A DNA stretch of 64,000 bases from positions 310,001 through 374,000 of the forward strand of contig OU015566.1 in the NCBI GenBank assembly GCA_907165135.1. Direction: 5' to 3'. This DNA comes from Oikopleura dioica. Lineage: Eukaryota > Animalia > Chordata. The notes beneath the pieces are model-generated. The model had not been told where the DNA came from and did not search any database. It was given only the letters and a program-made list of their open reading frames with translations. This document shows, piece after piece, positions 20,687 through 48,970 of the stretch (position 1 is the first letter of the stretch; each line of letters begins with the position of its first letter). The position numbers were made by a program, and so were the translations under genes.

Positions 20687-23600
20687 TTAATGTCCATTAA
20701 GAAATCTGAGAAAGACGACCATTAAACCAAAGAAGAGAAGAAGACCAATTAAAAGTATCCTGATAGCTTTGAAACTTTGGTAGAATGCCGACACTAAAAT
20801 AAGCTTGCATCTATTTGTTAATGATCTTATTCTAACCTCCTTTCGTATATTCTTTCATTCCACTGTAAAGTTGTTCCTGAGTCCAGCCAGTCTGAATAAA
20901 ATTTAATAACTCAGAATTTTCCAATAGATCTTTCTGGTCTTTGAATCTGAAAATAACTCACAACTTCCATAATCATTTGATCTTCCGGTGAAGGAGGCGT
21001 AGTTTCGTTCCAAGTTGGATTAACTCCACAAAAGTCTTTTTCCACTGGGAACTGATAAAGACGTTGGTCAGTCGAGTGGCAGCATGGACAACAAAAAATG
21101 AAAGCAGTCGTTTGCGAACCTTAATTTAAAAATACAGGTAATCAATTTAACCGCGTGGGACGAATCCGCGCGTATGAGCGCGGGACGAATTGTACATTCC
21201 ATTGTAGTTTAAGCGAAAACTTGAATAACTCGCGACTCGCTCATCCGATTCCCGCCAAATTTACAGACAATACTTAATCGAATACAGGCTTTCATAATTT
21301 CAATTTAAATTTTCGTTTTCCTGTCTGCAAACCTCATTCTCATATAACTTGTAGCTCTTGTTTTGACCGTTTGAGTTGATTTCGCATTGAATTTTTGTAA
21401 ATATTATTCAAAATTCGAAATCTCCAGTATCGAAAACCTATATTTTCACTTTGAAAAAATAAAAATCCCAATTGAGACCTGAATTACGAGTGAGAAAAGG
21501 AGCGCAGTGCGAAGTAGGTCAGAGTTAATCCGCTGCAGAGCGCTGGTGGTGCGCGATAATTCGGTGAAATTCAAAAGAGCGAGAGATTAAGGATGTGCAA
21601 AGGCGCATTTGAATTTTCAGATCTATACGATAAGTAGTTTTTGAACTAGGGCTGTTCAAAGTCTTAAACTACATTGAAATGTTCAATTCGTCCCACGCGG
21701 TTAAGGGGGTGGTGGTCGAGAATTGGATTTTAATCAAAAAAATTGGCTCAAAATTTTTTAAGAAAAATTCTTCTTTTTTCAATGATAATGAGTTTGAAAG
21801 GGTTCAAATTATGTGGGCGTTTCAGTTTAAAAAAGATTTTATTTCGGAAAAAGCTCAAAATATGCTTCTAAAGTGGACCTTTTTCTTGCGAAAACCCTTA
21901 ATTTTTTTCAAAATAAAATAATTCTGAAGAGAGTTGAGACCCTTAGGCGTGTATGGAAATAGCTTTTAGAAGGTTCTGTTACATTTTGAGACCGCAGAAA
22001 CTGGTTTTAAAAAAGTTGTTTTCTTAAAAATTTTTTTTTAACAATATCACGCAGCAAAATACGTATAAAAATCGGTTTTAAGACAGAAAATACAATTTTA
22101 AAGTTTCGAAAAATCGTCGATTCCCGACTTGAAATCGATATTTTCTAAAGTAAAGTTGGTGCAATCAAAAAATGGTAAGGACCGAAAATGATTCTTTATT
22201 ATCGAGGAATTCAAAAATACAATGATAAGTTCGAAAAATCGAAAAAACATTCTCTACCACCACCCTCTTAAAATAATTTCGAGCGAAATTTCGAAAATTT
22301 TACGGAAAAATATATTGTTAATAAATATTGTTAGAGCCTTAATAAAAGATAAAAATAGATAGGTATTTGGCGGCTATCAATGTCGCCATATGTATTTTAA
22401 ATGGTGATTCCCCTTACAATTTCAATTCAAATTTCTTTTTCAAACAAGGGATTCTTCATTTAGAAAATAGCCGCAAAATAAGGTCCTCACCTCTTAGATA
22501 GCTGAGCCAAAAATAGGATTTTGACCTCAAAGTTAGCGAAATCGGGGGGAGAGGAGATCCCTTAAGCGGTTAGAACTAGGATTTTCGAAAATAGCCAATT
22601 CTAGACCGGCGCTCAAAGCAAGGCATGCCAAGACATTCAAATTCTCTTTTCAGCTGAAGATAGAGCTAACTTAAGGTTGAAATGTCGATTTAGTATAAAA
22701 CCGCCGATTTTCGGAGTGTTGTTTTGCTAAAAATCGTCCCTTTTCACCCATTTTTGAATAAAATTTTTGAAAAAATACAATTTATCGTAATTTTTTAGAT
22801 TTTCATTATTCAAAAACATGTATGAAAATTTAATATCAACTCGCAATAAAAATCAATCTTTTGCTCGTTTACACGCAAAAAACAAGTTTCAAAATCCCGA
22901 AAAATCCTTATTTCATGACCTTAATTTTCCGATATAAAATTGGTCGAATCAAAAAAAGCAAGAGACCCAAAATGACCCATTTTTAACGAGGTATTAAAAA
23001 AAAGTATCAAATAACAATAAGTCGAAAAAAATTTTCCCGACCACCTCCCCCTTTAAAGGGGTCCCCAACGATTTTTCCGAAATTGGCCATTTTCGACCGG
23101 CGCTCACGCCAACACAGACTTATATTTTTCAAAAACTTTTTCACATATAAGTAGATCAAACCTAGATCTAATGAAGCGTGTCTCAGATTTTTTTAAAACC
23201 AACCACATTTCGCGTAACGGCGCCGAGAAAGAGCGCATCTCGCAGAAAATCGCGTTTTTGGCCATTTTTTCACCTGAGATTACTCCAAAAATTTAGGGAG
23301 ACACTGAATTGTGCCGCCCTGCGCCGCCTTGCGCCGCCCTGCGCCGCCCTGTGCCGCCCAACCTCACCGGGTTTGAAGATATTTGGTCTTTCAAAGGCCA
23401 TAATTTAAGCTTTTTATGTCAACTTAGTTATTCTCACTTATTTATATTGTCAAACAGTTAAAATAAGTAAAACCTATAATTTAGGGTGCCAGTAGCGTAG
23501 TTCTCAATCAAATTCAGATCTTGCATAAAATCACTAATATATTGAGCACGCGACGGGCCAAAGGCCCTTACGCGTGCATTTTCTGGTAGAGAACTCATTG

Positions 23601-25907
23601 GGTTGGCGGGGCCCAACTCTCGCTCTTGTTAAGAACTCTTTCCTAGGTCATGGTTTGGTCGATTGAGAGTCGATTGGTTTCGGACCGGGCGACGCTGGGC
23701 GGCGCGGGGCGGCGCAGGGCGGCGCAAGGCGGCGCAGGGCGGCACAATTCAGTACCCCCCAAAATTTAGGTTACAATATTTTTTTTCTTGCTGTTTCTGA
23801 AAGCTCTAACCCTAATTTAGTGAAGCGTCTCTCAGTTTTCTCAATTTCCAAAAAATGATTATAAAACAGAGACGATCAAAAAATGTATGATTTCGGAAAT
23901 TTCAATGATGTTAATTGCACTAAGGGCATAACCCAAACCCATTTTGTCGGGTATTTACAGAAAGCTTAGCTCATAGGTTTTCTAAAAAAAGGCCACATGC
24001 GACCCCTGGGGGGTGTAGGGCGGCAACATTCTGCAGCAGAACGGCGTTCTGCAAATGCAGAATGGCGTTCTGTAAATCAGAGTTCAAAAACACGCGGATT
24101 TTGAAAATTGTTGCGCACGCGCACGCACGCGCACGCGAAGATTGGGATCGCGCACGCGTGCGTGATCGTGCGCGTGCTCAAAATCCTAGAAAATTTGGCG
24201 TTTTTAGGTAATTTTTGCCGAGATAATTTCCAGAGTGGATTCAAATACATAAAATTTTTGGTTTTCGTATGTTGTAAAACAATTTTGATTTGTTTTTAGC
24301 AATAATTGATCTATAATTAACGATTTCAAAAATTTGAGAGGCTAAAAAAAGCTAAAATTCGACAATTCTATCCCTTTTTGCGCACGCGCTTGATCACGCA
24401 CGCGTGTGCACGCGTGTTCGAAAGTCGTTTCCGCACGCGCACGCACGCGCACGCGAAATTTTAAATTTCTCCGCACGCGCACGCACGCGCACGCGAGAAT
24501 TTTGCGTTTTTTGGAACTCTGCTGTAAATACAGAACGGCGTTTTGCACTCAAAAAATATATGCGCTTCGCGCGTGTCTTAAAGGAAATCTCAGAATTTCT
24601 AAAATCAGGAGTTACTCTTTAAGCTAAGCTGAATGCGTTTAAGGAGGGGGTCGATCGGGATTTCCGTGACCAAAAATGCGGGAAAACCTGATCAGATAGG
24701 CAAAATCTGAATTTACTGGCAAAAAGAAAAGGGTTGAAAAAATTAACCGGCGAAAAGTAGAATAAAATTTGGCCGGAAAAACTCGGTCAAAAATGCCGTC
24801 AAAGTAGGGGCATTTTCGCGAAAAAGCACCAAAAATAGTCATTTTTTTTATATTTTTCTTAATTTCACCCCCTAAATCTTATTTTTATCAAATGATTTTA
24901 GGCTCAACAGATTCAGGAGGATCTGAGGATTCCAAAAATATAAGATTCATACACAGACCATGTGTATACGCGAAATTACGATCACCTCTGAAAAAATTCT
25001 CGTCGAATGCATTTGCAGAACGCCGTTCTGGCAGAACGTGGCCGCCCGTCACCCCCCTGGGCAACAATAAAAAAGGGTTGACTCTTAAATATTTATGAAG
25101 ATGCAGCGAAATTGCACACTTCAAGGTCGATTTAAGACACTTTTTTTTACAAGAATTGAAAAAAGCTAGAGACCTTTTTTGCAGCTTTTTCATGAGGAAT
25201 TAAGATCTGAAGAGAAAAAAAATTAATTTGCAAAATTGAAAAATCGTGGGGGACCCCCTTTAACGGGCTCTCGAAAAACACTTATTTTCAAAAAATCTAA
25301 TTCCTCTAGGGGGGAAATTAAGAAAATTAGAAGAAACCATTCTGAGGAGCGCACTCACTTAGACTTCTCTCTCACTTAGACTCGCGCTCATTTTAACTCG
25401 TCGCTCGTTTTTTTGACCGTTTTTTTTTCGGCCAAATTTTTTTCTTTTTCAGAAAGAATAAAAAAATGAGAATTTTTCTATCAAAGATTCTACAGGAGTA
25501 CTGAAATATGAAAGAAAGATTACCTGGAAAAATATTATATATAACGTAAGTTATGAATTCTGGCGAAGCGGCGCGAAAATTCGCTGGAGAGAGTGGAAAT
25601 CGTGGAGAGTAATAGCCTGCAGAATTGCCGTTACCGCCGTGGTAATAGACTTTAATATCGCGAGTCTGGATAACCTCTAAAAATTGGTGAAGTCTTTCTT
25701 TTCGCAAAGCCAAAGAGTCTCCAGGATCGATTCTTCGATTGATTTGATTTAAGTTATAACTTCGATAATTGCTTATTAAAAAGTTATTTAAATCAATTTA
25801 CTGAATTTCTTCCATATTTTGTCCAATTCACACAAATCGCCGCTAACGACAACTTTCGGAAAACATTCGTTAATCGGCGCGCGATAAAGTTGAACAGCCT
25901 CTTGCAT
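20687..25907 (-). CDS. Uncharacterised tail-anchored protein, paralogue P1 of a three-member family
   Basis: Exons ~25907-25800, 25732-25524, 21119-20962, 20891-20837, 20793-20687. Peptide ...RKERLHQFLEVIQTRDIKV...FPLSPANFRAASPEFITYVIYNIFPG|SQTTAFIFCCPCCHSTDQRLYQFPVEKDFCG...WNETTPPSPEDQMIMEV|TGWTQEQLYSGMKEYTKG|V...ILLIGLLLFFGLMVVFLRFLNGH*. Homologous to P2 and P3. The start codon and intron 1 boundaries are uncertain. Confidence 0.82.
21151..21700. mobile_element. piggyBac-like MITE in P1 intron 2
   Basis: TTAA|CCGCGTGGGACGAAT ... ATTCGTCCCACGCGG|TTAA. Confidence 0.8.
21705..22267. mobile_element. Kolobok-like MITE sharing a TTAA with the previous element
   Basis: TTAA|GGGGGTGGTGGTCGAGAA ... 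TTCTCTACCACCACCCTC|TTAA. Confidence 0.7.
23057..25259. mobile_element. Kolobok-like element with nested MITEs
   Basis: TTAA|AGGGGTCCCCAACGATTTTT ... AAAAATCGTGGGGGACCCCCT|TTAA. It contains a GGG-type element (~24011-25054) and an hAT MITE. Confidence 0.65.
24078..24521. mobile_element. hAT-like MITE (CAGAGTTC TIR, GCACGC-repeat subfamily)
   Basis: Perfect 8-bp TSD CTGTAAAT. The uninterrupted host element is seen at 50932-51192. Confidence 0.85.
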
Positions 25908-26029
25908 AGACCGATTCAGAGTTGGAAATGTATCGAAATGTAGTTTCTTTTTGCAATGTTTATTCGAACCCCGCAATCATATCACTTTTTAACCCTTTTT
26001 CTGGATAAGGGTAATCTCTTTAAGGTTAA

Positions 26030-26464
26030 CTTCTCAATGCACGTGGTCCAATCATTGGACCACGGCGACTTTGACCCCCTGTAATTCCCGTTGTAGTTAT
26101 CTGTTTGACCTGAATTTTGTAATGTGAGCTGACAAGACAAAAACGAACCACTCTGTGAAGTTTCGAATGAAAACTCAAAAGTGGTGGCGTTTTGCACCAG
26201 ATTTCTCTTTCGTTCTCTGGTGAAAAATCGGAACGGATTTTTCGATTTACAATTGTTTATTTTTATAGAAGAGGGTTCAAGCTTTCTAGCTATATATTCA
26301 CGAGCTTTTTTACTTGACGGAGACGTCAATTCGAGCCAAAAGTCCTGAGCGCTGTTTTTCACACTCTGAATTTGGCGCGCCGCGCGGGGCTGGATAATGC
26401 ATTGTGGTCCAATAATTGGACCCCGTGTTTTGAGCGCTTAGTCGCGCGCCCGTGTATTGAGAAG
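26030..26464. mobile_element. TTAA-specific (piggyBac-like) MITE
   Basis: TTAA|CTTCTCAATGCACG ... CGTGTATTGAGAAG|TTAA. Confidence 0.7.
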
Positions 26465-26513
26465 TTAATGGTATACATCGGCGCGGCGCTGCTCGCTCGA
26501 TCAGCGCTCCGCC

Positions 26514-26969
26514 CAGAGTTCGAAATTTGTTGGCAGTACTGCCACGACTGCCACTGGCAGCTGCCAATTTCGGCAGTCACTTTGCAGTGGCAGTTACATT
26601 TTTCAAGTGCTGGCAGTTACTGGCAGCTGCCAACCGACTGCCACTTCGAAAGATATTAATTTCTTTCTAAAGTTTTCTTTCTAGAACCACAAAAAACAAC
26701 GCTTATGATTCAAATTCGCTCCCGAAACCTGTATTATTCAATTTTTTTAATCAGAAGATACATTTAAATCTCAGATATTGTCTCTTTTATATGTTTAACT
26801 TGTCGAAAAGACTGTTTTGAACTTAGTTTAACGACTTTAAAAATTTTTAAAAATAGTATCGAAATCGGCAGTATTTGGCAGTCACTTAGCAGTGGCAGTC
26901 GCCATTTAAAAAAAGTTGGCAGTCGCTTGGCAGTCGCAGTCGCCATTTTCTTTCAGATTTCGAACTCTG
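26514..26969. mobile_element. hAT-like MITE (GGCAGT subfamily)
   Basis: Perfect TSD GCTCCGCC. Near-identical inverted copy at 40434-40886. Confidence 0.9.
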
Positions 26970-27248
26970 GCTCCGCCAGAACCTATTTCTCACGAAGCCG
27001 TAAAATCTGAACGAATAAAGATTTTTTCAAAATTCAAAAAGGTTCTGAATAATCAAAGTCACTTCTATTAACACAGCAAAAATGATAATGATTGTCAAAG
27101 AGGAACTATATGAAAATTGCCACTTTCCTTCAAACGACATTTTCTTCGATATTTCTCATCCAAAATTTTTGAAAATTAGACTGTCTTGTAGAGAATCGTC
27201 AGCTCTACAAATCCTGTTTTTCAGATTATTGTTTTAAGCTCTTCGGAT

Positions 27249-27796
27249 CAGGGATGTAAATCACCCCACCATTTTCACCCCACCACAGCAAAATGGTGGG
27301 GTGGTCGGTGGTGAAAAAAATCACCCCACCACCACCACTGAAAATGGTGATAGTGAAAAATCACCCCACCACCACCACTGAAAATGGTGATGGTGAAAAA
27401 TCACCCCACCACCACCACTGAAAATGGTGAAGAATTTCCCCACAGTAACCATTTTCGACGTGATAAATTTATCATCAAAGCCTATTTTTCAATAAAAAAG
27501 GGCCAGGTATCATTTTTCGAGTACCGCTATCACGATTTTATTTATTATTTTCACTTTTGGAGAATATTTTTAGATAATTTTGCCAATAGATTTACCACCC
27601 CACAACCACCATTTGAGTGGTAAAAAATCACCCCACCACCACCACTCAAAAAGGGTGGTGGTGAAAAATCACCCCACCACCACCACTGAAAATGGTGGTT
27701 GGTGAAAAATCACACCACCACCACCACTGAAAAAAGGTGGTGGTGGAAAATCACCCCGCCACAGTGGTGGGGTGGTTGTGGTGATTTACATCCCTG
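27249..27796. mobile_element. hAT-like MITE (CAGGGATGTAAATC TIR)
   Basis: Perfect TSD CTTCGGAT; same length as 9885-10432. Confidence 0.9.
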
Positions 27797-29371
27797 CTTC
27801 GGATATTAATATGCGACCTTGAAGTCAGCGCTGTGAGGTCGTGGCGTGAAAAATAGAGCGGAGAGGCGCGAGAAGAAGTAGCGCTCTTTACGAATCGCGA
27901 TGTAAGATTAATGAAAGCTTAAAACAAAAATCTGAAAAACAGGATTTTTAGAGCTGACGATTCTCTACCAGACAGTCTAATTTTCAAAAATTTTGGATGA
28001 GAAATATCGAAGAAAATGTCGTTTGAAGGAAAGTGGCAATTTTCAGATAGTTCCTCTTTGAAAATCATTATCATTTTTGCTGTGTTAATAGAAGTGACTT
28101 TGATTATTCAGAATCTTTTTGAATTTTGAAAAAATCTTCATCTGTTCAGATTTTACGGCTTCGTGAGAAATAGGTTCTGGCGGAGCGCGGGTCGAGCGAG
28201 CAGCGCCGCGCCGATGTATACCATTACCCTTAAGAAAAAAAAACTATAAAGTAAGCGTTTTTTATTTTTCTGTGCGCAGATTAGATTCTAATTTAAATTA
28301 TCGAATTTCAGAAAAAATTTTAAATGGGGAGCAAATTTGGAGCTCCCAATTTACTCCAAGCCCCGGAATTCCGGGCTCCTGCAGCAGAAAAAAGGTGAAA
28401 CTATTTCCACAGAGTGTCCCCTTTAATATTGACCAAATGCTCTCTGATTGGCTTTTATTTTTGAAGCCCCAGTGGAGGGCGCTCTCCGAGGAGCGAGCCA
28501 ATCAGAGAGCCCTGAGTATTCCTTTTGTAATATTTAATATAATATTTAATTTAATATAATTTAATTTAATATAATATTTAATTTGTTTGATATACAAATT
28601 CCTACATTTTAACCTATTTCCGGGCAAGAACCGCGACGAACCGGAAGCACAACCGGTTGGTCAAAAAAAATACCACACCATTTTGATCAGTAATTAATAA
28701 GCTTCAATTTGAGCTATAAAACATCATCATAGCATGCTTATATCAGAAGTTGATAATATTGGATTTTCGTATCTGGCTGCTTGCGTCAACTTTGGAGCTC
28801 TAGAATCATATGAAGGAAGCACTCCGCAATAATAAATTTCATATGTTTCGATGCATCTTGCGCTTATCTTTCACATGGTAGGCATCAAATTATCAAAATC
28901 GATCTAGCACGCACTCAAAAGCCGCTTCTAATCAAACTAGTGCTTTTTTTCTCGCTAAAAATCCCCCAAAAAAAGAGGTAAGATGACTCATATCGAAAAT
29001 TCTGTAAGTGCAGTTTTTCAAGGCTTGTCTTGATGCATATGTTCTGAAAGTATGGGGAGATTTTTCAAAAGAACCTTGAAAATCGAAAAACACCGCGGTA
29101 AGCCTAGTAATACTTTTCCAACTCTGGACTGCGTCGTTTGGTGGCTCATATTTTGTAACTGATTACCTAGTACCGTTTTATCCACTTTAAAAATAAATGT
29201 TCTAGAGAAATCAAACTTTCCGCAGAAAATAACGGTTACCTTCTTGCAATGCCTGATTGGAAATCATTGATTGCTTATTCGAAATTTCACTTCTACATAT
29301 ACAGTTACAGTTATTTTCCTCTTTTGTGGACATTTTTTGTCCTAAAATTTCATAAAAATGTCCACAAAAGT

Positions 29372-29631
29372 GGGGAGACGGACGGTGCCGGTACCAAATT
29401 GGTACCCGGTACCAAAAAATTGGTACCCGGTACCAAAGTCAAACATTATTTCTGACTCGTCAAAAAACTAATGTCCGCTCCGCGGCTGAAGTGTAAGAAA
29501 ACTTCATTTATTGACCGAATACACCTTTTAAAATCAATTTTGGCTCGGTATCCTGACAATTTTTGGTACAGGGTACCAGAAATTTGGTACCGGGTACCAA
29601 TTTTGGATTGGTACCGGCACCGTCCGTCCCC
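29372..29631. mobile_element. GGGG-terminus MITE with GGTACC repeats
   Basis: GGGGAGACGGACGGTGCCGGTACC ... GGTACCGGCACCGTCCGTCCCC; flanks ACAAAAGT / GCAAAAGT. Confidence 0.75.
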
Positions 29632-30716
29632 GCAAAAGTGGGCAACAGTCTTCCAAAAAATGTCCCGCCGTAGGGGCTCAAAATTTTTTCTTCGATAAAT
29701 TTTTCGTCGAAAAATGGCAAATTTCATCATCGAAACGTATTTTTTACCTTTTTTTACCATTTTTGGTCAATTAAACAGTAAAAGCCATTGATTTCTTATA
29801 AAAAGATCCTGATTTTTGAAAAAAACACCCTATTTTTTCCTTTTAAATTTTCTCGGTTGACAAATGCGCACAAAAATGGAACATTATTCTTGCAAATATG
29901 TCCCAGAAAAACCCTCCCCCCGTCAACAATTTTCGAAAAATTTATTCGGAATTTCATAATTTTGACCCCGGAAATGGATTCTACAGGTCAAAAAACGATT
30001 TTGAGGCTTTATTTTTTGGGGGTCTATCTCGACTCTAACACCCTCAAAATCGCGTTTGAAAATCGGACTTTTTGACGAAAAATGACGAAAAAATCCCAAT
30101 TTTGCTATAATTTTAGATTTTTATGGGTCAAGAAGTGCTCCGAGCAAGTTTTTATGGTAAATTGAACTTCCAGGGACGCTAAGAAGCCAAAATATGGCTT
30201 TTTTGAAATTTTCGATTTTTCGAGGAAAATTGTTGACGGGGGTCCTTCAAGAAATATTTTCATTAGAAAAATCGCGTTCAAAAATGACGCAAAATGATGA
30301 TTTTCACGGACATGACTTGAAGTTGAGCTCTCTATGGCCAAACTTCCTTAATCATTTTTTCTGAAAAAATTTTAACTCTAGTTTAAGGCCAAATCTATAA
30401 GTAGAAGAAGAGTTTATAAAAATTTTCTTACCCATCTGAGCCAGAGGGCTGTTTGAAAATGGTCAATTTTCTGAAAACCGCCCGGTACCTCCTTTAAAGA
30501 TTTTTATTTACATAATGTTTCAAAATTAATAAATATTGTTTGTCTCTAGAACACATTTATAAAGATGTTTTTTCGTATTTAAATACATCAGTTTTGTATT
30601 TTTAGTGTCAGCTAAGGTAAAAATCAAGTTTTTGTCGTGCGAATAATAATTTTTGAAGGCAAGTTTCTTTGTTTTCTTATAAAAACTCTTATTCATATAC
30701 ACTAAAAAGTCTTACC

Positions 30717-31969: not shown

Positions 31970-32772
31970 GTCTTATCACCGGCAAATTGAAAACTAATTT
32001 TATAAGGTCTCAGTAGCGGAAGTCTGAACTGACTTCAGATTTTGGCATAAAATCACCAATTTATTAAGCACTCGACGGGCCAGAGGCCCTTACGTGCGCA
32101 TTTTCTGACAGAGAACTCATTGGTTTTTTCGTTCACGTTCAAAGATCGTCTGTTTTAGAGCTTATCAGTGCTCGTTAGCCCCAAAAAATCTAGTTTGACT
32201 TTAAAAATTTCGCGACAAGAATTTTTTCGGATTTCGAGTGAACAGTGATCAGTTCTTTTAAATCGCTGTTCACCGAGTGAAATTCACTCTACTGTAGACT
32301 CTGTAGAGTGAACAGTGAACAGGGGTTTTCGGCGGATTTCGAACCCTGTGCCGAGCTCTTGCTCTTATTTCGAGCCATTGGTTCGGTTAGGCGGCGCTAT
32401 TCAATATCCTCGAAATTTCTGAATCATCAAAGAAAGGGTCTGTTTGCCCTTCGAAAACGTCTCTTCTGAAAAGATCTTCGGATAATATATTTTCATTTAG
32501 ATTTTGGGTCTCAAGAACGAGTTTGATGGAATAAATCTGTTTAAAATTATAAAAAACGAGGGTTATTGAACAGCGCCGCCCGGTCCGTTATAAACCAGGT
32601 CTCTTTTGACAAAATCATAATCAAACAAAACTGCGCTTTAGGAAGTTTGCGAATCAATTTTCAATCTTTTTGGTAAAAGTAATTTAAAAAAACAGGAAAT
32701 CTTTTACTGAAAATAATTTTGATCAAAAAAGGGGTCCTAAATAAAACATTTAGCTGTCAAGGTTGGCTTCTG

Positions 32773-37534: not shown

Positions 37535-37576
<42 letters not shown>

Positions 37577-39430
37577 TTAATCATTCCTTATCAAATATTT
37601 CCCAGAGAAAAGGTAAAGTAAGAGCTATTGTTTTGGTTTATGGTTAGGGTTTAGGAAAATTGTCGAGGAATTGTGCTTAGCGATAAGTGATAGGGTTAGG
37701 CTAATTGACCCTCGACTCGCCGGGATTCTGTCTGCATATTTTTTCCCTGCGAGTCGAGGGTCAGGCGAAAATCGCGGCGAGTCGAGGGTCTCCCCGAAAT
37801 TTTCTGGCAGTAATGTCACGACTGCCACTGACAGCTTCCAAAGATATTTTGTTTTCTTTCTAGAATGACAAAGAAAAAAAACGTCAATGATCAAATTTTT
37901 CTCCCGAGACCAAATTTATTCCGTTTCTCTTCTCAAAAGAGACATTTATATTTCAAATAATGTTTATTTTATATGTTAAACTTGTCAAAAAGACTGCGTT
38001 CAACCTAGTTTGATCTTAAAAAATTGTATAAATACTTTTAAAATTGGAATTTTTTGACAGTCAGCTGCCGATTTTGGCAGTAACTTGGCAGTGGTAGTCG
38101 CTATTTTCTTTCAGATTTTTAACTCTGTTTGCCCCAATAATACATATTTTTGAAAATTTTGGTAACAATGATTTTTTCTCCAAATATAAGTAAATCAATT
38201 AATACTGTATTCTTTGAAACGCTTTCATTTTTTCCGTCTTTCGGAAAAGACTTTTTTCAAATCAGTTTTTAGATCAAAAACAGTAAAGGTGATCAAGTTT
38301 TTTATGCTGGAGAAAAAAGTGGGTTCTGTGCAAGAAACTGTTGCGGAGCAAACCGAGATTTCGACATGGCTATTACAAACAATCATGGAGAAGAAATTGC
38401 CAGATTCGTTCGACCTTTTAAGCCTCAAGTGAGATGTGGCTTGATTTATTCGCCATTGTTTCTTCAAAAAATGGGTATGTCACAAACGTGTTTTTCAATT
38501 CAAACAAAAAAAAAACAAAATTTTTCATTTAACAGGCGCCTGATTTTAGATTAAACATTATCTTTCAACATTTCTAAATCAAACCGGGCCAAGGACCTTG
38601 GCCAAAGGTATAGTGTGTTGCGCAGGTAATGTGACTCTTAAGGGTAGAAGAGGATCCTTGCGCGCGCCCCTTTGACGCTATTTCTCATCCTCAGAGAATC
38701 TGATGGGATTATTATGCACCAAAATTTGTTTTTGAAAGGTATACTCAAACTAAGTAAGTAGTACTACTAAGTAATATTTTTAAAATTTTGATTTTCGTAA
38801 TTTGAAATAAAAAAGTAAATACATAACTAACATACACAGTTAATTTATACTGAAAGAATTTTGTTGCAAAAAGATTCAGTTTTTAAAAAAAATTCCCAAT
38901 CCAAATTATTCAGGTAACTAATTGACATTTATCATTAGATATTTTAACAAATGGAAATATTGTTGGGAAAATCCGTCAAGTTGCTGATTTGTCAAAGCCG
39001 ATTTTTTCCATTCAAACCGCAGACGATCAAGAAGTTCTTCGACTAACTGGCCCGGCTTTGTCATTCGCCTGCTGTGGCGATCTTGAGTTTGAAGTCTCCA
39101 CTGCTGATGGCGTTGTTGTTGGTAAAGTTTCAAAGAAATGGGAAGACACTGGCGGAGAATTTTTGAAAGAGATTTACACAGATGCGGACAAGTTTGGAGT
39201 CACTTTTCCGGTCGATTTGGATGTCAATGTCAAGCTTTCTCTTCTTGGCTGCGTTTTCCTCCTTGTAAGGCGAAATTCTTTTGATGAAAATAAAATGTTT
39301 TTAGGATTTCATGTTTTTTGAAGATTCTTGCAAATGGACTTCTCACGCAAAAGATGAGGAAGAAGGAAGCGGCAGCTCAAAGCTAGACTTCCTCATGTGC
39401 ATATGCGACTTTATGTGTAGCGATGACTGA
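32773..39430 (+). CDS. PLSCR: Phospholipid scramblase (PLSCR family) with a long Pro/Gln/Gly/Tyr-rich N-terminus
   Basis: Exons 32773/32785-32929, 34925-35451, 36012-36281, 38273-38474, 38939-39264, 39305-39430. Motifs GLEYLYNVKKLTIEQQVEAFETYSGFETANQYK|IKN, CARNCCGANRDF, ACCGDLEFEV, GKVSKKW, YTDADKFGVTFPVDLDVNVKLSLLGCVFLL|DFMFFE align with PLSCR. Intron 1 is modelled as GA-AG and intron 3 as GC-AG. The exon 2/3 junction is less certain. Confidence 0.93.
34420..34667. mobile_element. Hairpin MITE in PLSCR intron 1
   Basis: CAATTTCAGGAGTTAAGAAGATTT ... AAATCTTCTTAACTCCTGAAATTG; arms ~100 bp. Confidence 0.75.
34925..35420 (+). repeat. Coding tandem repeat (PQPGYAPAPQVDAYGQPIPQQAPV-like units)
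   Basis: Repeated CCTCAACCTGGATATGCACCTGCTCCTCAAGTCGATGCGTATGGGCAACC within PLSCR exon 2. Confidence 0.85.
37531..37574. repeat. (TA)n microsatellite
   Basis: Directly visible. Confidence 0.95.
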
Positions 39431-39749
39431 TTATAAATCATTTTGCTGCGAGAAAATACACTGTTATCATTTTCAATATGCGGTCTCGAATTTTTCACAT
39501 TCTTTTTGATGGAATTTAAAGATTTTGGAATTCATTTTTTTCCCGTAGAAAATTAAATTTGCGAGTCATTTTCGGCGTAAAAGAAAGAGGTTTTGTCAAA
39601 AAAATCAAATTATGAATTTTCTGCAAATTATCAAAACGAGAGACATTATTCTTCTACATTACGTTTCTTTTATAAAGTCGACATGTTAAACAAATCTTTT
39701 GATCTTAGTTTGTCCTTCTAAATATCTATACCTCGGATACCTGATTTAA

Positions 39750-40129
39750 GGGGGGGGGGGTCGACGAGAATCGGGATTTCCGTGACCAAAAATGCGGGAA
39801 AACCTGAGTAGATAGGGAAAATCTGATTTTATTGGGGGATAGAAAAGGGTTGAAAAAATCAGGCGGCGAAAACTAGAAAAAATTCTGACCAGAAAAAATC
39901 GGTCAAAAATCCCCTCAAAGTAGGGCCATTTTCGCGAAAAAGCACTATAAATGGTCAATTTCTTTACAATTTTGTTCATTTCACCCCCTAAATCTAATTT
40001 TTATCAAATGATTTTAGGCTCAACAGATTCAGGAGGATCTGTAGATTCCAAAAATATAAGATTCGTATTCAGACTATGAGTATAAGCGAAATTACGATCT
40101 CGCCGGAAAAAATTCTCGTCGACCCCCCC
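39750..40129. mobile_element. Kolobok-like MITE
   Basis: TTAA|GGGGGG..TCGACGAGAAT ... ATTCTCGTCGACCCCCCC|TTAA. A truncated copy lies at ~24640-24990. Confidence 0.85.
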
Positions 40130-40433
40130 TTAAGGCACCCCAATTTAAGGCACAAATTTGCTTACTCCTGCAACCATCGAACTCTAATTTAAGGCATATT
40201 ATATCATATTATTTATATGCCGCATATATTTTCGGTGATTAGATTCCTCAAGGGTCTTGTTATTTGGATCGCATGGTCTTTGGACTTCAAAAACTAATCC
40301 AGAGGTATTTTATGGGGCCTACATCCAGAGGTATTAGCGTCTACCCGACGCTGCTCGGCACTCCCTTCCATGCCTTTTGCAACAAAAAAAGATGTTTTGT
40401 TCTCATTCGAAATTGTCTACTCTTAGATGAGAG

Positions 40434-40886
40434 CAGAGTTCGAAATCTGAAAGAAAATGGCGACTGCCACTGCCAAGCGACTGCCAACTTTTTTTAAATG
40501 GCGACTGCCACTGCTAAGTGACTGCCAAATACTGCCGATTTCGATACTATTTTTAAAAATTTTTAAACACAAACTAAGTTCAAAACAGTCTTTTCGACAA
40601 GTTAAACATATAAAAGAGACGATATCTGAGATTTAAATGTCTCTTCTGATTAAAAAAATTGAATAAAACAGGTTTCGGGAGCGAATTTGAATCATAAGCG
40701 TTGTTTTTTGTGGTTCTAGAAAGAAAACTTTAGAAAGAAATTAATATCTTTCGAAGTGGCAGTCGGTTGGCAGCTGCCAGTAACTGCCAGCACTTGAAAA
40801 ATGTAACTGCCACTGCCAAGTGACTGCCGAAATTGGCAGCTGCCAGTGGCAGTCGTGGCAGTACTGCCAACAAATTTCGAACTCTG
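40434..40886. mobile_element. hAT-like MITE inserted in a Penelope-like terminal fragment
   Basis: Perfect TSD GATGAGAG. The empty site is visible in the related copy at ~50705-50780. Confidence 0.9.
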
Positions 40887-40934
40887 GATGAGAGTATTCT
40901 TCTTTTTCTGAGCTGTAAAGTTTATTCTGTACTA

Positions 40935-40972
40935 GGGCTGGTGAAGGCACTTTTGTAGACGAAACGCGTCCC
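40935..40972 (+). ncRNA. Degenerate Penelope-type hammerhead motif
   Basis: GGG-CUGGUGA-A-GGCACUUUUGUAGAC-GAAACGCGUC-CCAAUAAA. Core A6 is changed to G and stem II is broken relative to the 50.8-kb copy. Confidence 0.55.
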
Positions 40973-41400
40973 CAATAAAAAACGTATCTATCAATAAGGA
41001 GAAACGCCGTTTAGAGACACGAAAAAAAGCATAATTTGGCAAAAATTTTATTTTTATACCGTCAACTCCCCACTTCCTTAAATCAGGTATCCGAGGTATA
41101 AGGAATCGAAATTCTATAAAAATAATTGCGGTTGTTATTTCAAAAAGCTAGCAATCATTTGGCTTTCCGCATCATACAGCGTTTTCTGGATAATTTATTT
41201 GCTGAAAATTATAGTGAATTTAGGGATCCCCCTGTTTTTCAAGTACTTGATGAGGGTCTATATTTGATATTTTTAGATTCCTCGTGCTCTGAGGATCATT
41301 TTGATGTATAATATTACCTCTTTACGAACATCTTTCCTCAAAATATTAGCCTTCAAAAATTTCGAAAATGCATGGAAATTGTACTTAGCTCATTTATTGG

Positions 41401-41439
41401 CAGCGACTAGTTTCGGAGATAGATTCCTTCGTCAGGCTA
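41401..41439 (-). ncRNA. Penelope-type minimal hammerhead ribozyme (appears intact)
   Basis: Minus strand: UAGC-CUGACGA-A-GGA(AUCUAUC)UCC-GAAACUAGUC|GCUG-CCAAUAAA. Stem I is UAGC/GCUG, stem III is the palindrome ACUAGU, and the cleavage triplet is GUC. Confidence 0.75.
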
Positions 41440-43607
41440 TAAGGTCAATGAACAGTTAACCCAGAAACAAGATGTTACCTCTGAGAAGCGAAAAGCGCGT
41501 CTGAGTAACAAGCGAGATTACAAAACGAGATATTTGAGCGTAACAGAAATTGCAAAAGGGGCGCCAAGGATGCACAGTTAGCGTACAATGCAAGAATACT
41601 TCTAAGTGTGTCAGCTAGATGTCCCTTTCTAGAACTGTTTACTTTTACTTTTTGAAGCGCAACAAATAGTCAGTTATGAATTTTTACAACGGCTACCAGG
41701 GTTTGTGAATAAGGGATTGACTGAAATTTTGAAATTTTGAAGAAAATCAGTAATCCCGCTCCCTCCGTGCTCCCAAAAAAGGGAGCTCCCAATTTTACTC
41801 CTTTTTTTCAAATTTCAATATTTGATTTAGTTTTTCATTTTATTTATTATATTCACAGTGGCAACATCATCGTTCAAAATTCATCATCAAGGGTTCAAAA
41901 TTTGCTGTTTTCTCTGTTCACTCTGTGAATTTCACGGTGAACGGAGATTTCGAATTGCTGTTCACTCTAGAGTAGGGATCGGGAAAAATTATTGGCATGA
42001 AAAGTGTACAGCGATTTGAAAAAGCAAGTGAGCAGTGAACTATTCACTCTGTTCACTCGACTTGTTTTGCCAAATTTACTTTGTCATCGATAATTTGAGT
42101 CAAAATTTTTGACTCCGAAACTCGGCAGAAGATTGCTGTGAAAAAGCAACAATTGTGTTCTAGAATGTATTTTTGCGAAAAAAATGTAACGAGAGTACAT
42201 CTGTTAATATGATCTAACGAAAGAGACGATTTTTTATCCTCTCATTTTTTTAACCGTCTCTTTTTAATAATAAGAAAGCTATTTTGCTTCGAAAATCTTA
42301 GTTAACCAAAAAAAATTTTTGTCTGATTTCGTGCAGAGTGAACTGTTCAATCTATTCACTTGATTGAACACTGAACAGGACTTTCGAATCCCTGTTCACT
42401 CAAGAATGAAAAGTAAACAGTATTTTGAGATTGCTGTTCATCTCAGAGTGAACAGTGAAGGGGGGTTTCGGCGGATTTCGAACCCTGATCGGTTTATTGG
42501 ATGAGCAGACTTCAACGATTTCTTCTTTGCATTTATTCTTTTGAAATTATGAATTTCAATGAAGATGATTTTTAATTTTTATTTGAATAAAATTTTCAAA
42601 GAAACATTTTAAAATATATCGAATCATATAATAACGTCTTTTTTTTGTATAAATTCGTGCGGGCGTTGCATCTATTTTCATAATTATGTCCATAATCTGA
42701 GATTTTATTTTTTTTTAAATTATAAGAAAGAAACAAGCGGTTAAATCCTTCAACCTTTCGGGATCCCGAATGTTTTTGTCTTCAAACCGGGGACGCTCGA
42801 TTTGTGTACCAAATTTTTTTGGTATTCGAATACCAATTTTTGGTATTCCAATACCAAATTTTTTTTACCAGATCATAGTTTTTCCTTCAAAAAACTAGTA
42901 AACCACTTCTAAAGTTTCCTTCATGACAGGCGCGGAGCGCATAGGGTCTCTTTAGGTGTATCAAATTTGGACTTTTTGACGAAATTTGGTATTCGAATAC
43001 CAATTTTGGTATTTGAATACCAAATTTCGTCCCAAAGTGTCTCCCCTTCAAACCTTTCGGGGATGATTTTCAATAGTTTCTATCCCAGAAAATATTTGAA
43101 GCCAAACAGTAACGTCAAAGTACATATTTATTGAAGAAAATGGAGGCGCGAAGGAAAAAAAATAATTAACTCGAAAAAAATGGATCTCATAAAGTTCTCT
43201 GTAAAACAGGCGCGGAGCGCAAACATTCTCTTTTACTACAAATTCAATATTTATAAATGGTCTGGCCTTCTTAGACCATCGAATTTGACGAAGGAAGATA
43301 GAGTTATCATTTTTGATTAGTAAAATGACCTAATTCTGCATTTATGCCACTTTTTTTAACGTTATCCTCAACAAAACTCCCGAAAGATTCGGGCGATCCC
43401 GAAAGTTTCGGGAAATCCCGAAAGATTCGGGATCCCGAAAGGTTGGAAGTGACAACCGAAACAAGCTAAATCAGTTTCTTCCAATTCATTCATTTCTGGT
43501 CACTCGTCTGGGATTGACACTAGGTTCATGTTCGAGTTAAGGTTTCGGACTCTCTTTTGGTTAGGGTTAAGGTTTCACTTCGGGCATTCTATTGATCAAA
43601 AGATGGC

Positions 43608-45254
43608 GTGATTCTAGCACCCTTATTCGGCAATCCTGGCGGCAACAATAATGAAGACAGGAACCATCAGTGTTCGTCGGGTCTTCAGCAAGCTTCCAAT
43701 GCAGCAGTAGAGGATCATTTTGGAGGGCAAGAGAGGTCGCAATGTAGTGGTCTTCCTGCATCTCACCAAGGTCAACCTGGAAATCAACAGTATCCTCCTA
43801 TTGGAGAAATTTCACCTACTCTCTATTCGAGTTATGCAATTCCTTCAATAAGCGCGGTTGGTAGTGTTATGGGGCCTGTTCGTGTTCTCGATGAATATGT
43901 TTTACAAGACTTGCAAAAGCTTTTCAGGTTCACCGGTTTCGAATTGGGCTTCAAATAGCTTAAAAATTGTTCGAAACCAAACTAAGATCACCAATACGCG
44001 CTGATATAGATGAACGAAGAGCGATTCTTCGACAATATATTCAAGTCTTAAAGAGCCGTGATATCAAAATTCGAGAAACTTACCAAGAAGACGGAGCAGG
44101 AGACAATCCTCGCTCTGTGACAGTTTACGTGCCAACCAAGTTACCCCTGACCGCTGAAAATTTCGCAAAGGGAAACCCTGAATTTGTTTATTATTTTATA
44201 AAGCATGTTCTTCCGGGTAAACTTATTTATTATTATTCGGTTTCAATTTAATTTAGGCGGACCCAAATATATCAATTATGGCTGCTGTCCGCATCCATTT
44301 GATAACCGATTATATCGATATCCAGTCATCTCAACTGGATGCGGCTACAAATCTGGCTGGAATGAAAACATGCCTCTTTCAGAAGAAGACGAAATGCTGA
44401 TGGAATGCGTAAGCGATTCAATCGGAAATTTATACTTATGAAATGTTTAAGACTGGTTGGAATCAAGCTCAACTTTGGGAAGGGATGAAAAGAGTTCAAT
44501 CAGCATGTAGGTTTTAATTTTCATAGTTAGAAATTGCGACAGTTGAAAATGTCATGAGTGTCAAAAGAACATGTTTCTTTTGATGATTTATCACTAGGCC
44601 TCGGACGTAAAAAAGACGATTTTCACCATCCGGTCATCGTCCGGGAACATGAGAGGGCTCATTCGAAAGGTTTTGATAAGGGCTTTCTATTTGTCCGATA
44701 AAAAAACTGGACCCTCCCTTTCTGTTACGAGTTATTATGAAAAATATTTTTCGAAGCTTACCTTCAAAATCAAATATCTCGAAAAAGAAGGACAGGGCCC
44801 ATTTTTTTATAAGACCAACAGAAAGCCCTGTTCAAGAGCTTTCGAATGAGCCTACTCTTGTTACCGTACGACGACCGGCTGGTGGTGATGATTTTTTACG
44901 TCCGAGGCCTATTTATCACCATCATTTCGATTTTTAACAAATTAATCAATTTCTTTAGTTTTTTTTGTTTATTATTATTACCGCTTAATTCCTTTTTTTA
45001 TAACGGACCCCCTCAGCTTCTTTCAAAAAATCAAATTTCGAAATCTTTAAAAACCGAAAATATGGTGAAAAAGATGATTTGGGGGTTCCTTAAATTCAAA
45101 ATATTCGTGAAGGTCATAAAATGAGTTTTCAGTGGATTCAAGTCATTGCTGTGCACTCTATTTCAAACTTGTCGTCTGCGCGTTCATCTTGTTCTTTTTC
45201 GTTATGGCGTTCATTGACCCTACTCATCCTTTTCATGATGCTCTTGCTGGCTAA
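43608..45254 (+). CDS. Uncharacterised tail-anchored protein, paralogue P2 (5' end unresolved)
   Basis: Exons ~43603-43927, 43987-44216, 44257-44408, 44452-44506, 45133-45254, all GT-AG and phase-consistent. Peptide ...LQKLFR|SPIRADIDERRAILRQYIQVLKSRDIKI...LPLTAENFAKGNPEFVYYFIKHVLPG|GPKYINYGCCPHPFDNRLYRYP...WNENMPLSEEDEMLMEC|TGWNQAQLWKGMKRVQSA|LDSSHCCALYFKLVVCAFILFFFVMAFIDPTHPFHDALAG*. Confidence 0.85.
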
Positions 45255-46017
45255 AAATCAGATGAACTGCTACTTGAGTCAATAAATGATTATTATCTTT
45301 TCTTAATAACATCGAAATAAAATGAGAGTGCAGTCACTCAAAATGAAATCGCGGTATATGATTCAGTGACGACGTGATTAAGACTTTATTTTCTGATACA
45401 ACCTTACGTTCACAAACGGGAAATTCAACCAACTATCGGGGGGCGGTCAGCCGTTACAAAAGTGGAATTGGTACAGCGGGTACAAATTTTGTACCCCCGG
45501 TACAAGGAGTCGTAATTTTTTTGAAAATAAATACCGATTTCTACCCATTATAATGCGAATTTTCGGACAGAACTCCACCTCAGCTATACCAGTAAGGGGT
45601 TTCCTTCAATTCTAGCGCGAACCTCAAACTAATTCTTTGATTTTATTTCTGGTCTGTACCGGCGGTACAAAAATTTTTGTACCGACATTATTAATTTGTA
45701 CCGTCGCCACCCCACACTTTAACTATCTGGCAAAAGGGTTAAAAAATTATAAAACCTCTGTTCACTTTTCACTCTCTTTACTCTGTCCAAAACCGAAAAA
45801 AAAATTTTTTTTGGAATATTTTTTAAGTTAACCTATTTTTTTTAAGTTAATGCAAACTATTAAGTCTGAAAAGAGATGTTTTACGCAGTGACAGGATAAA
45901 AAATCGTCTCTTCTGATAATTCTTAGATTTAATTGTATACTTTTTTTGAAGTTTGCTGATCTCTAGAATGTGTGCAGAGAATGTTGTGAAAATGGTAAAC
46001 GCAATCAGTTACAAGTT

Positions 46018-48970
46018 ATGAGTTATTTTGACGACGACAAGTACGGGGATGTAACCGATCCGGTGGGATCAGCATTTGATTCGGGTGACAGCTTCCAGCC
46101 TCAAGATACATCCGTAACAATCCCACAACCATCAGAACAACCGAAGTGGGCCATGGCTCCTCGTATTTTTCCTTCGAGTCAACAAGAAGAACACGTTGAA
46201 ATTAATGAAGCGCCTATTTATCGAGCTCCAGAAATCGTTGTCGATTCGAAGATAAGTTACCTAGGGACAATCGAGAAAAAATTCAGGAAATTGATTTCAA
46301 CGAAAGACATTTAACCTAAAAATTTTCTTTAGAGCGCTTGTAGAAGGGTTCGAAATCCGCCGAAAACGCAGAGTGAAAAGCGAATTACGAACTCTGACGT
46401 GAACAGAAATTTAAAGACTTTAATTTTCTTAGGGAACTAACCATGGCCCGTGTAAAGTGACCTTGTCGAGCTAGCTGAGACGCTATTTCACACGCGCCAT
46501 TTTATTTTCTGAATATAAATGATAAAGCGAAAGAATCGGTAATCCGGAGTTATTAGCGCGCGCGTTGGGGGAATCGTGCGCAATCGGAAAACACATTTTT
46601 CTCATTTTTGAAAACCCACCATTCCCATCTTTAAGGAAAACCAACTTTCCCATCTTTGAAACCCATCTTTCCAATCATTCCCACCTTTCCCATCTTTCGG
46701 AAAACCCATCTTTCCCTATCCCATCTTTTGTTTGAAAGATGAGTTCCCGACCGAAGCTCGACAGGTTATTGTTATCATAACCCCACAAGCCAATTTTTTT
46801 TTTCGAGAATCGTCTGCTCTTTCTTCTGAATGTATCTTTTATTTCGTACGATGAAAATGAGGGAGCTAATCATTTGATCATTTCCAGGAGATAGCTCAGC
46901 CTTTAATCTTTCAATTCATGTCCTTTCGAAAATTTTATCACGACTGTTAGACCCTAGAAAAGCCCGACCTATGCGTAGGTCGATATGCGGGCAGAAGTGA
47001 CAAATTTTTCACGCGGGCAGGGGTTAAGAGGGGGGTCGCCAATATTCGAATAACGGAAAAACAAGAAAGCGGGAAAATCTGATTGTATTAAAAACATTTG
47101 ATTTCTTAGGTAAAAAGGGAAGGATGGAAAGAATTCATCGGCGAGTAGAAAAAAAAATTCTTGGAAAACTTTCTCAAAAAATAAGGTTAAACTGGGGGCG
47201 TCTCCCGAAAAAAAATCTCGAAACCCTTAATTTTTTATTGACAATCAAGTTTTATTTACAGATAGATAGGACCCTTAAGGAGGGGGTCGTTGATATGAAA
47301 ACTTTTCGACTTTGAAAATTTTGACCAGATTTTGAATTACTCATGAAAAAATAAAATTTTTTGGTTCCTGGCTTTCTTTGATTGGTCAACGTTAAAGCTC
47401 GCCTTTTTTGCGCGAGATACTGGGTCAGAATATCAATTGGTGTTCAAATCAGAGTTCGAAATCTATGGGAGTAAAATTGGGAGCTTCCAAAGGGAGCTCC
47501 CTTTTTTGGGAGCACGGAGGGAGCAGGAGCACAGGTTTTCAGGGCTGGGAGTAAATTGGGAGCTCCCCAAATAATAATAATTATTAGCTTAATAATTATT
47601 AATTATGATACCGTGATTGCTCAGATTTTTATTAGAAGAGACGTTTTTTTTATTAGATTTATTTTTAAATGTCTCTTCTGAAATTTGATATCAATAAATA
47701 GCCTAAAATTGACCTAAATTTGGTTATGTAATTTTAATAAGAAAATATTGAAGTCATTCACGAAATTCGCCTATTTGGCATTATGCCTATTTATACTTTC
47801 TTTATCATTGCTATATAATAACCATACAACGATGGTTTTGCTACTTAGACTTTACTTAATAAAATTAAAAACTTTCGAAAATTTTTGAAATTTGAAAAAA
47901 GGGAGCAAAATTGGGAGCTCCCAAAGGGAGCTCCCTTTTTTGGGAGCAGGGAGGGAGCAGGAGCACGGGTTTTTTACGAGGGAGCTCCCTTTTTTTCAGG
48001 GTGAGGGAGCAGGGAGGGAGCGGGAGCACGGATTTTCTACCAGATTTCGAACTCTGGTTCAAATACAAATTTTAGGTATTCAGTAAAAAATAAGGTCCGA
48101 ATCCGCGGAAGAATACTTATTTAGACCACCAAAAATTGTGAGTGTGCGCGACGCGCCTTAATTAATATATTTTTTTTAGTAGAAAAAAATTTGTATAAAA
48201 ATACCGCGGGAAAACAAAAGCACTGTAGACGATCTGAAATAAAGTCATAAATACTCAAATTAACCCTTTGTGATAAGAAACGAAGTCTACCGATCTACAA
48301 ATTCTGATTCTATCTCGAAATCGATCGAAGAGCTAAAAAGGGAGACGATATCCAAGTGCGAAAAGAACGACTTATTCAGTTTTTACAGATTATTCAAAAC
48401 CGCCACATTACTGTCTTTCAAACTCCAACTCTGGAACCAGAATTTTATCTCTCTGCTGACAATTTTCGAGAAGCAGATCCTGATTTCGTTGCATATGTTA
48501 TTTCTAAAATTCTTCCAGGTAAAAATTCAACTTCTTCAGATTAAATCAGAATATTTCCTAAGGCTGCAAATTGCCGGAAACCTTAGTCAAACCCTGCAAT
48601 TTTTACGACGACCGTCTCTATCAGTTTTCGATTCGAAAAACCGCCTGCTGTTGTTTAAACAAGCCAGAGTGGGATGACTTAATGCCGCCTTCAGAAGAGG
48701 ACCTGATGATCATGGAAGTTGTAAGTTCTTTTAATCCCATTGGATTCACAACTTTTTGATTTAGACTGGTTGGACCAAAAGACAGCTTTACAAAGGGATG
48801 AATAAGGCGCAAGAGGATCGTAAGATAAAAGATATTCTTATTTCTGACTCAAAATTATATTTTAAGTGATGGGACAATATGTGTCAACAATTTTTTTGCG
48901 ATTTTTTCTTTACATCTTCATTATTCAAGTTGTGACTATACTGAGCTTGATGAAAGCTGGAATTATTTAG
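46018..48970 (+). CDS. Uncharacterised tail-anchored protein, paralogue P3
   Basis: Exons 46018-46286 (GA donor), 48331-48518, 48563-48720, 48765-48819, 48867-48970. Peptide MSYFDDDKYG...IEKKFR|AKKGDDIQVRKERLIQFLQIIQNRHITV...FYLSADNFREADPDFVAYVISKILPG|CKLP...DDRLYQFSIRKTACCCLNKPEWDDLMPPSEEDLMIMEV|TGWTKRQLYKGMNKAQED|LMGQYVSTIFLRFFLYIFIIQVVTILSLMKAGII*. Confidence 0.87.
47450..48056. mobile_element. hAT-like MITE (GGGAGC subfamily) in P3 intron 1
   Basis: Perfect TSD GTTCAAAT; internally deleted, inverted copy of 7768-8589. Confidence 0.9.

Follow-up and report, generated by a model that had tools for sequence, protein, structure and literature searches.

What do three loci (P1, P2 and P3) of the Oikopleura dioica genome encode, all lying within one window of 64,000 nucleotides (assembly GCA_907165135.1, contig OU015566.1, 310,001 to 374,000, forward strand), whose coordinates are used below unless a chromosome is named? 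The reading that we prefer, and think rather probable, is that they are tail-anchored paralogues whose cytosolic domain resembles none yet described and whose cysteine cluster may be S-acylated. As the initial annotation of this DNA had proposed, all three are real spliced genes at the places where it put them, with open frames each terminated by a stop codon, and all share the intron phases 2, 1, 0, 1, a fourth exon of exactly 55 nt and a hydrophobic last exon.

On the forward strand, P2 begins at the ATG of the public gene model (43869): exon 1 (43869..43927; MGPVRV..LQKLF plus AG) ends in phase 2 at a GT donor, and is followed by exon 2 (43987..44216), exon 3 (44257..44408, with a CC cluster, DNRLYRY and W....PLSEEDEMLMEC), exon 4 (44452..44506, 55 nt) and exon 5 (45133..45254), which encodes the predicted tail-anchor helix and the stop, with AATAAA 29 nt downstream. 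The start originally assigned to P2, 43608, did not hold up: the codon there is GTG, the open frame between it and the annotated start (43608..43868, +) has no in-frame ATG, and the nearest ATG to this frame, at 43603, is out of frame by one base. N-termini in the family are variable, as had been claimed, but not all “unrelated”: by alignment, the P2 upstream frame is homologous to the N-terminus of another paralogue, P0013.

P3, also on the forward strand, opens with a low-complexity N-terminus (exon 1, 46018..46286, ending ..EKKF plus AG) and a GA-AG intron of 2044 nt, with exons 2 to 5 at 48331..48518, 48563..48720, 48765..48819 (55 nt) and 48867..48970 (predicted tail-anchor helix and stop, AATAAA 22 nt downstream). 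Translations of both exon models are identical throughout to database proteins, P2 to P0003 (CAG5101851.1, chr1.g30) and P3 to P0006 (CAG5101853.1, chr1.g31). Calling the family “unrecognised” was an overstatement, since P2 and P3 were available beforehand as unnamed public gene models; their GenBank records give neither a name nor a domain or family.

P1 runs on the reverse strand from an ATG at 25907. Exon 1 (25801..25907) ends ..KKF plus AG in phase 2 and is followed by TAAATT, a non-canonical donor; exon 2 (25524..25732) contains RKERLHQF and PEFITYVIYNIFPG and ends in phase 1 at donor GTAATC; after an intron of 4404 nt, exon 3 (20962..21119) has a CCPCC cluster, DQRLYQF and W....PPSPEDQMIMEV, ending in phase 0; exon 4 (20837..20891, 55 nt) reads TGWTQEQLYSGMK.. 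and ends in phase 1; and exon 5 (20687..20793) encodes the hydrophobic C-terminal helix and the stop, with AATAAA 93 nt downstream. Intron 1 is irregular: 68 nt long, it reads TA-AG or, equivalently, GT-AA, and no canonical splice keeps the family junction. There is an alternative, canonical and in-frame GT-AG intron of 83 nt at 25801-25719 (GT donor at 25801), giving a product 5 aa shorter. The P1 product was absent from the database proteins returned by our searches.

The TA donor of P1, where five paralogues have GA, is one of several observations that could mean that copies have decayed, some or even all of them now being pseudogenes or untranslated relics of a subtelomeric cluster that expanded recently, with P1 the foremost candidate. 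A copy at chr1:416214 has TT after exon 3 in place of the GT donor seen in a near-identical twin; the pattern search missed exon 4 at two loci (the annotated protein of one of them, P0009, does have it, with TNW replacing TGW); and an ATG has been lost from the P2 upstream frame. Such decay nevertheless seems very unlikely: every exon of P1, P2 and P3 is open, a canonical intron is available to P1, invariant residues are retained in 13-15 copies, dN/dS between paralogues is 0.23-0.29 (for pairs with unsaturated synonymous sites), and nine loci have public models, from an annotation made with RNA-seq hints (PMC8008620). Purifying selection on the family, as originally suggested, is supported by these dN/dS values, and the genes are presumably expressed.

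The family also bears on splicing in this species: non-canonical introns make up 11% of the introns in this assembly (PMC8008620), and the alternation of GA-AG and GT-AG at intron 1 between paralogues should be useful for studies of non-canonical splicing in O. dioica. The idea of a “frozen” five-exon architecture is approximately right. Exon 4, 55 nt long, is directly followed by a GT donor at 13 of 15 loci, and by a hydrophobic last exon at 12 or more of those, but intron 1 is missing from one paralogue, and exon 2 is interrupted by an extra intron in three. In a fused form, exons 1 and 2 read straight through as ..QKKFRADEF..RKERL in one paralogue, confirming where the two exons meet in the other copies. 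Most of the motifs first described as shared are present (D.RLY.(F/Y); W....P.S.ED...ME^TGW...QL..GM, with ^ for an exon junction; (F/L).L...NF....P(E/D)F..Y.I...(L/F)PG), but the spacings “C..D” and “K.FR^....D...R” misfit some genes.

How large is the family? Similarity among P1, P2 and P3 is beyond chance (P2 and P3 are 32% identical, BLASTP E = 3e-29), but the three-member count was wrong: an exon-3 profile search of the OKI2018_I69 genome found at least 15 paralogous loci, these three among them, with matches at E 1e-14 to 1e-27. The count is for OKI2018_I69, an Okinawa assembly and the one genome that this search covered. Nine of the loci fall in chr1:330-547 kb, and GenBank holds seven further unnamed paralogues from the same genome beside chr1.g30 and chr1.g31.

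Relatives beyond this genome were sought with single exons or database proteins; joining by coordinates served only for counting stops and for the comparison with P0003 and P0006, so the searches reached P1 as separate exons, and folding covered P2 and the P3 domain. The original statement that no known domain is recognisable was borne out: Pfam gave nothing above threshold for the exons or for six full-length members (the best sub-threshold match, RecX_HTH3, reached 15.6 bits where 26 were required), and no match came from PDB sequence profiles. A HMMER scan of 1.84 billion representative proteins returned only O. dioica OKI2018_I69 proteins, apart from spurious matches to tandem-repeat proteins (P0008 and P0010-P0012, rejected as relatives, which score by summing short partial matches), consistent with the proposed lineage restriction. 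Scans of metagenome and viral contigs yielded no relative, and exact-product look-ups of P0003, P0006 and P0013 nothing outside their own genome. Word-index protein searches returned nothing for the P1 exon-2 frame, P0006 alone when queried with itself, and four O. dioica proteins with the family alignment; the last search did not recover all the rows that it was queried with, which marks its sensitivity here as low. A limited full-text literature search found no paper treating these proteins as a family. A viral or transposon origin is not supported: there is no viral match, and the paralogues share host-type intron positions. A UBA/CUE relationship was also considered and is not supported, no such family appearing in the Pfam results or among the best 50 structural matches; the resemblance is our own impression of the SEEDxMIME-TGW-xxxQL segment only.

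The proteins, about 200-260 aa long, combine a low-complexity N-terminus that varies between members, a compact alpha/beta domain (about 150 aa), a poorly ordered loop with one to four clustered cysteines just ahead of an invariant D-x-R-L-Y, and a final part in which an acidic helix (SEEDxMIME) and a turn at T-G-W lead to a long helix continuing into the hydrophobic segment at the extreme C-terminus. That the domain is globular, as suggested from the outset, is supported by two confident AlphaFold2 models, of P2 (pLDDT 89.5, pTM 0.82) and of the P3 domain (pLDDT 83.7, pTM 0.80), built on shallow alignments of 21 rows, many of them single-exon. Both have the same order of secondary-structure elements and are mostly helical, with 6 helices and only 2-4 short strands (two short hairpins); in P2, helix 152-193 continues into the anchor segment. 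Structure searches of the PDB and the ESM Atlas found no fold match for the predicted domain, and an ESM Atlas feature search, queried with exon 3 and with P2 residues 1-167, gave no usable match. The domain is without a detectable relative by sequence or by predicted structure. Proteins evolve fast in O. dioica, and an alternative is that the domain belongs to a known family from which it has diverged very far, in which case the family here would not be truly new; given as a rival to a domain of a new kind, this alternative strikes us as quite unlikely.

The putative C-terminal tail anchor stood up well. Hydropathy windows give a single C-terminal hydrophobic segment (KD19 2.2-2.6); seven of eight annotated members have one segment of KD19 >=1.6, ending 3-24 residues before the C-terminus, while the tail of P0007 is weakly hydrophobic (KD19 1.35). 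No N-terminal hydrophobic segment was found (best window in the first 48 residues <=0.67), and no other segment reaches 1.6. Because a signal peptide is absent, a GPI anchor is not supported and post-translational insertion is proposed: the products would enter the membrane as tail-anchored proteins, the domain facing the cytosol. The anchors are very hydrophobic, so the membrane of residence would most likely be the ER or the endomembrane system.

The label “Cys-rich” suits these proteins only modestly, with 4-9 cysteines each, although these do cluster in one loop (in most members) and near the membrane helix. Both the loop cluster and the cysteines beside the helix may carry S-acyl groups that would hold the domain close to the membrane; a domain so held would most plausibly serve as a membrane-bound adaptor or binding module. 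S-acylation is not guaranteed, because the number of loop cysteines varies from 1 to 4. Might the clustered cysteines instead bind metal or form disulfides, in a structural or redox role, rather than serve as lipid-attachment sites? Cysteine and histidine do occur together in the loop (CCPHP, CCHST, CQH), and an additional cysteine in the hairpin after it (..FCG..) is conserved in most members; against this, the variation in loop cysteines extends to their spacing, with no conserved four-ligand pattern, both models have their lowest confidence in the loop (pLDDT ~55-70), and the probable cytosolic location speaks against disulfides. We consider such a role unlikely.

Taking the cysteines as candidate lipid-attachment sites, a broader proposal can be put forward tentatively, as somewhat less than an even bet: that the fold and the family originated among appendicularians, perhaps in the O. 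dioica species complex itself, and grew to about 15 copies, most of them in a single cluster close to the left end of chr1, and that they form a new class of tail-anchored, lipid-pinned cytosolic membrane modules without counterpart in other animals. Should the models be correct, a very small animal genome has kept, under purifying selection, about 15 copies of a compact and confidently predicted domain for which 1.84 billion representative proteins offer no relative and the PDB and ESM Atlas no analogue; this would be a clean case for the origin and expansion of a new membrane-protein family and fold in a fast-evolving chordate, and the family offers a concrete O. dioica target for work on localisation, S-acylation and structure. 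Since Oikopleura has many orphan gene families, the present value of this one is moderate.

Among known systems, the nearest class in layout is that of the tail-anchored proteins inserted by the GET/TRC40 pathway, such as Sec61beta, cytochrome b5 and the SNAREs: like them, the family lacks a signal peptide and has most of its sequence ahead of the anchor, with one hydrophobic helix in the final ~30-40 residues and a very short stretch beyond it, but it is related to none of the three in sequence or fold. The adjacent cysteines (CC, CPCC, CCCC) in the flexible loop of a predicted cytosolic, membrane-associated protein would be analogous to the S-acylated clusters of the SNAP-25 linker, cysteine-string protein and the CCCPCC motif of phospholipid scramblase 1. 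Scramblases would also be matched in having a Pro/Gly/Gln/Tyr-rich N-terminus together with a C-terminal membrane helix; a relationship to them is not supported, however, as the family has no Pfam scramblase match (PF03803) and is predicted to be mostly helical, where scramblases would call for a Tubby-like beta-barrel.

The best-supported reading of P1, P2 and P3, the three spliced paralogous genes, is that they belong to a multigene family encoding tail-anchored proteins, with a cytosolic domain that lies outside any described family or fold. Six-frame translation shows short open frames bearing the motifs at 20.7-25.9 kb (minus strand) and 43.6-49.0 kb (plus strand). Exon borders were set by anchoring peptides to coordinates and inspecting the flanking bases, giving 25907-25801, 25732-25524, 21119-20962, 20891-20837 and 20793-20687 for P1 (minus strand); 43869-43927, 43987-44216, 44257-44408, 44452-44506 and 45133-45254 for P2 (plus strand); and 46018-46286, 48331-48518, 48563-48720, 48765-48819 and 48867-48970 for P3 (plus strand). 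All three models are open frames with a terminal stop, with products of 211, 205 and 257 aa respectively, and AATAAA follows 22-93 nt past each stop codon. The intron phases (2,1,0,1) and exactly 55-nt exon 4 described in the initial annotation recur in all three. The P2 and P3 translations are identical to CAG5101851.1 (chr1.g30; database protein P0003) and CAG5101853.1 (chr1.g31; P0006), so both were already public models, though unnamed, from an annotation (OKI2018_I69) made with AUGUSTUS and RNA-seq intron and exon hints (PMC8008620).

The start originally proposed for P2, at 43608, has to be replaced: the codon there is GTG, and the annotated start is ATG 43869. The open frame spanning 43608-43868 has its homologue in the N-terminus of paralogue P0013, but the sole ATG nearby, at 43603, sits out of frame by one base. 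Possible explanations are a frameshift, a homopolymer error left in the nanopore-based assembly, or an N-terminus in decay. Just upstream, 43380-43440 holds a short palindromic unit in several tandem copies (..GATCCCGAAAG(A/T)TTCGGG..). Between P1 and P2, a plus-strand open frame at 38989-39321 reads ..ACCGD.EFEV.. and ..FGVTFPVDLDV.., then ends hydrophobically; we take these motifs to be phospholipid-scramblase-like, and the frame is presumably an exon of a scramblase-family gene unrelated to P1, P2 and P3.

The family is larger than the three members first claimed. Searching the whole genome (64,281,565 bases, 19 contigs) with exon 2, exon 3 and an exon-3 profile gave 15 loci: 11 on chr1 (nine of them within 330-547 kb), three on the PAR scaffold and one on chr2. 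The 55-nt exon 4 with an immediate GT donor is present at 13 of the 15, followed at no fewer than 12 of these by a short hydrophobic last exon. A pattern search did not find exon 4 at the other two, one of which encodes P0009, where TNW replaces TGW in the annotated protein. Exons 1 and 2 are fused in the paralogue at PAR:5219575 (single frame ..QKKFRADEF..RKERL), an independent check on the exon 1/2 junction elsewhere, and three paralogues have an extra intron within exon 2. The five-exon architecture, initially called frozen, is therefore well conserved but not fixed.

The donor of the first intron varies among paralogues. At the same site, five paralogues (including P3) have GA, three (including P2) have GT, and P1 has TA; the GA-AG junction is used by the annotated proteins P0006, P0007 and P0009, and one family gene lacks the intron. 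The authors of the Okinawa assembly put its non-canonical introns at 11% (PMC8008620). In P1 the intron can be written as TA-AG or GT-AA, with identical mRNA; a canonical GT-AG alternative (25801-25719, 83 nt) keeps frame and loses five residues. Donor-site evolution in O. dioica could be studied at this position (25800 and 46287 in the window; loci L026, L027, L037 and L038), where the paralogues form a small natural series. The 2-kb GA-AG intron 1 of P3 (46287-48330) contains a 22-nt tandem array (46598-46676) and, at 47437-48086, repeated units reading ..ELPFLGA.REQEH.F.. in several frames, and thus repeat-derived sequence. Intron 2 of P1 (4.4 kb) owes its unusual length partly to a 479-nt unit (23289-23767) that looks like a MITE-type insertion, bounded by GC-rich 89-nt inverted repeats (87% complementary) with GCGCCGCC motifs.

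Are these genes under constraint? A main rival is that individual copies are decaying, with P1 the weakest of the three. Near-identical inverted duplicates on chr1, at 416214 (minus; L034) and 534507 (plus; L033), share 94% exon-3 aa identity (pN 0.027, pS 0.033); the 416-kb copy reads TT after exon 3, where its twin has a GT donor; the annotated product, P0005, breaks off there, and this copy may have been recently disabled. On the other side, dN/dS (Nei-Gojobori counts summed across the conserved exon 2 and exon 3 cores), for which values near 1 would mean pseudogenes, is 0.23-0.29 in the three pairs with unsaturated synonymous sites (pS 0.45-0.57). The low identity and old duplications first proposed are borne out: P1, P2 and P3 cores share 38-49% aa identity, and their pS of 0.65-0.84 makes these duplications old. 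P2 and P3 are 32% identical over their full length; P1 and P3 each share 62% of exon 2/3 core residues with the PAR:5217931 copy, and P2 clusters with the copies on chr2 and at chr1:435 kb (50-51% core identity). Nine residues are invariant across eight aligned proteins: D, R, L and Y of D-x-R-L-Y, two W, and E, D and M of the acidic helix.

As anticipated, hydropathy places a single strongly hydrophobic segment at the very C-terminal end (KD19 2.2-2.6 for most members), with none at the N-terminus. AlphaFold2, given the public P2 protein and a 21-row alignment made up of paralogues and translations of single exons, predicted helices 12-18 and 27-43, a hairpin (47-54/62-69), helices 76-81 and 84-94, a second hairpin (120-123/126-129), helix 139-148 and a long helix, 152-193, continuing into the anchor (mean pLDDT 89.5, pTM 0.82); a low-confidence loop (block 101-110, pLDDT 55) contains a CC cluster. 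The P3 domain alone (residues 71-224) gave the same element order (pLDDT 83.7, pTM 0.80). Given this topology, anchors of very high hydrophobicity and a flexible loop whose cysteine cluster varies, the loop cysteines may be S-acylated, and the proteins might reside in the ER or endomembranes and act as adaptors. Another main rival is that these cysteines bind metal and are not lipid-attachment sites.

As for the cytosolic domain of the tail-anchored family, searches used single exons, then database proteins that match the P2 and P3 models exactly, with P1 entered as separate exons. An exhaustive HMMER run of the exon-3 profile (13 paralogues) over 1.84 billion representative proteins, one per 50%-identity cluster, so that close orthologues from other strains could hide behind Okinawa representatives, returned eight true matches, all O. 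dioica (Oidioi.mRNA.OKI2018_I69.*); a word search recovered a ninth. Four non-Oikopleura matches were tandem-repeat proteins whose scores summed many partial matches. No Pfam family passed threshold, either with the exons or with six full-length members, in agreement with the initial annotation, and PDB sequence profiles, BFVD (for the fold), and JGI metagenome and IMG/VR contigs held no relative. Foldseek against PDB found nothing better than E 0.15, ESM Atlas shapes reached TM 0.37 or less, and full-text literature searches found no paper on the family. A further main rival, which seems unlikely, is that the domain is an extremely diverged member of a known family. Lineage specificity here is a statement about protein databases only. 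The family first called unrecognised is real and broader than initially thought, but was partly public already as unnamed gene models; orphan families of this kind are common in the O. dioica genome.
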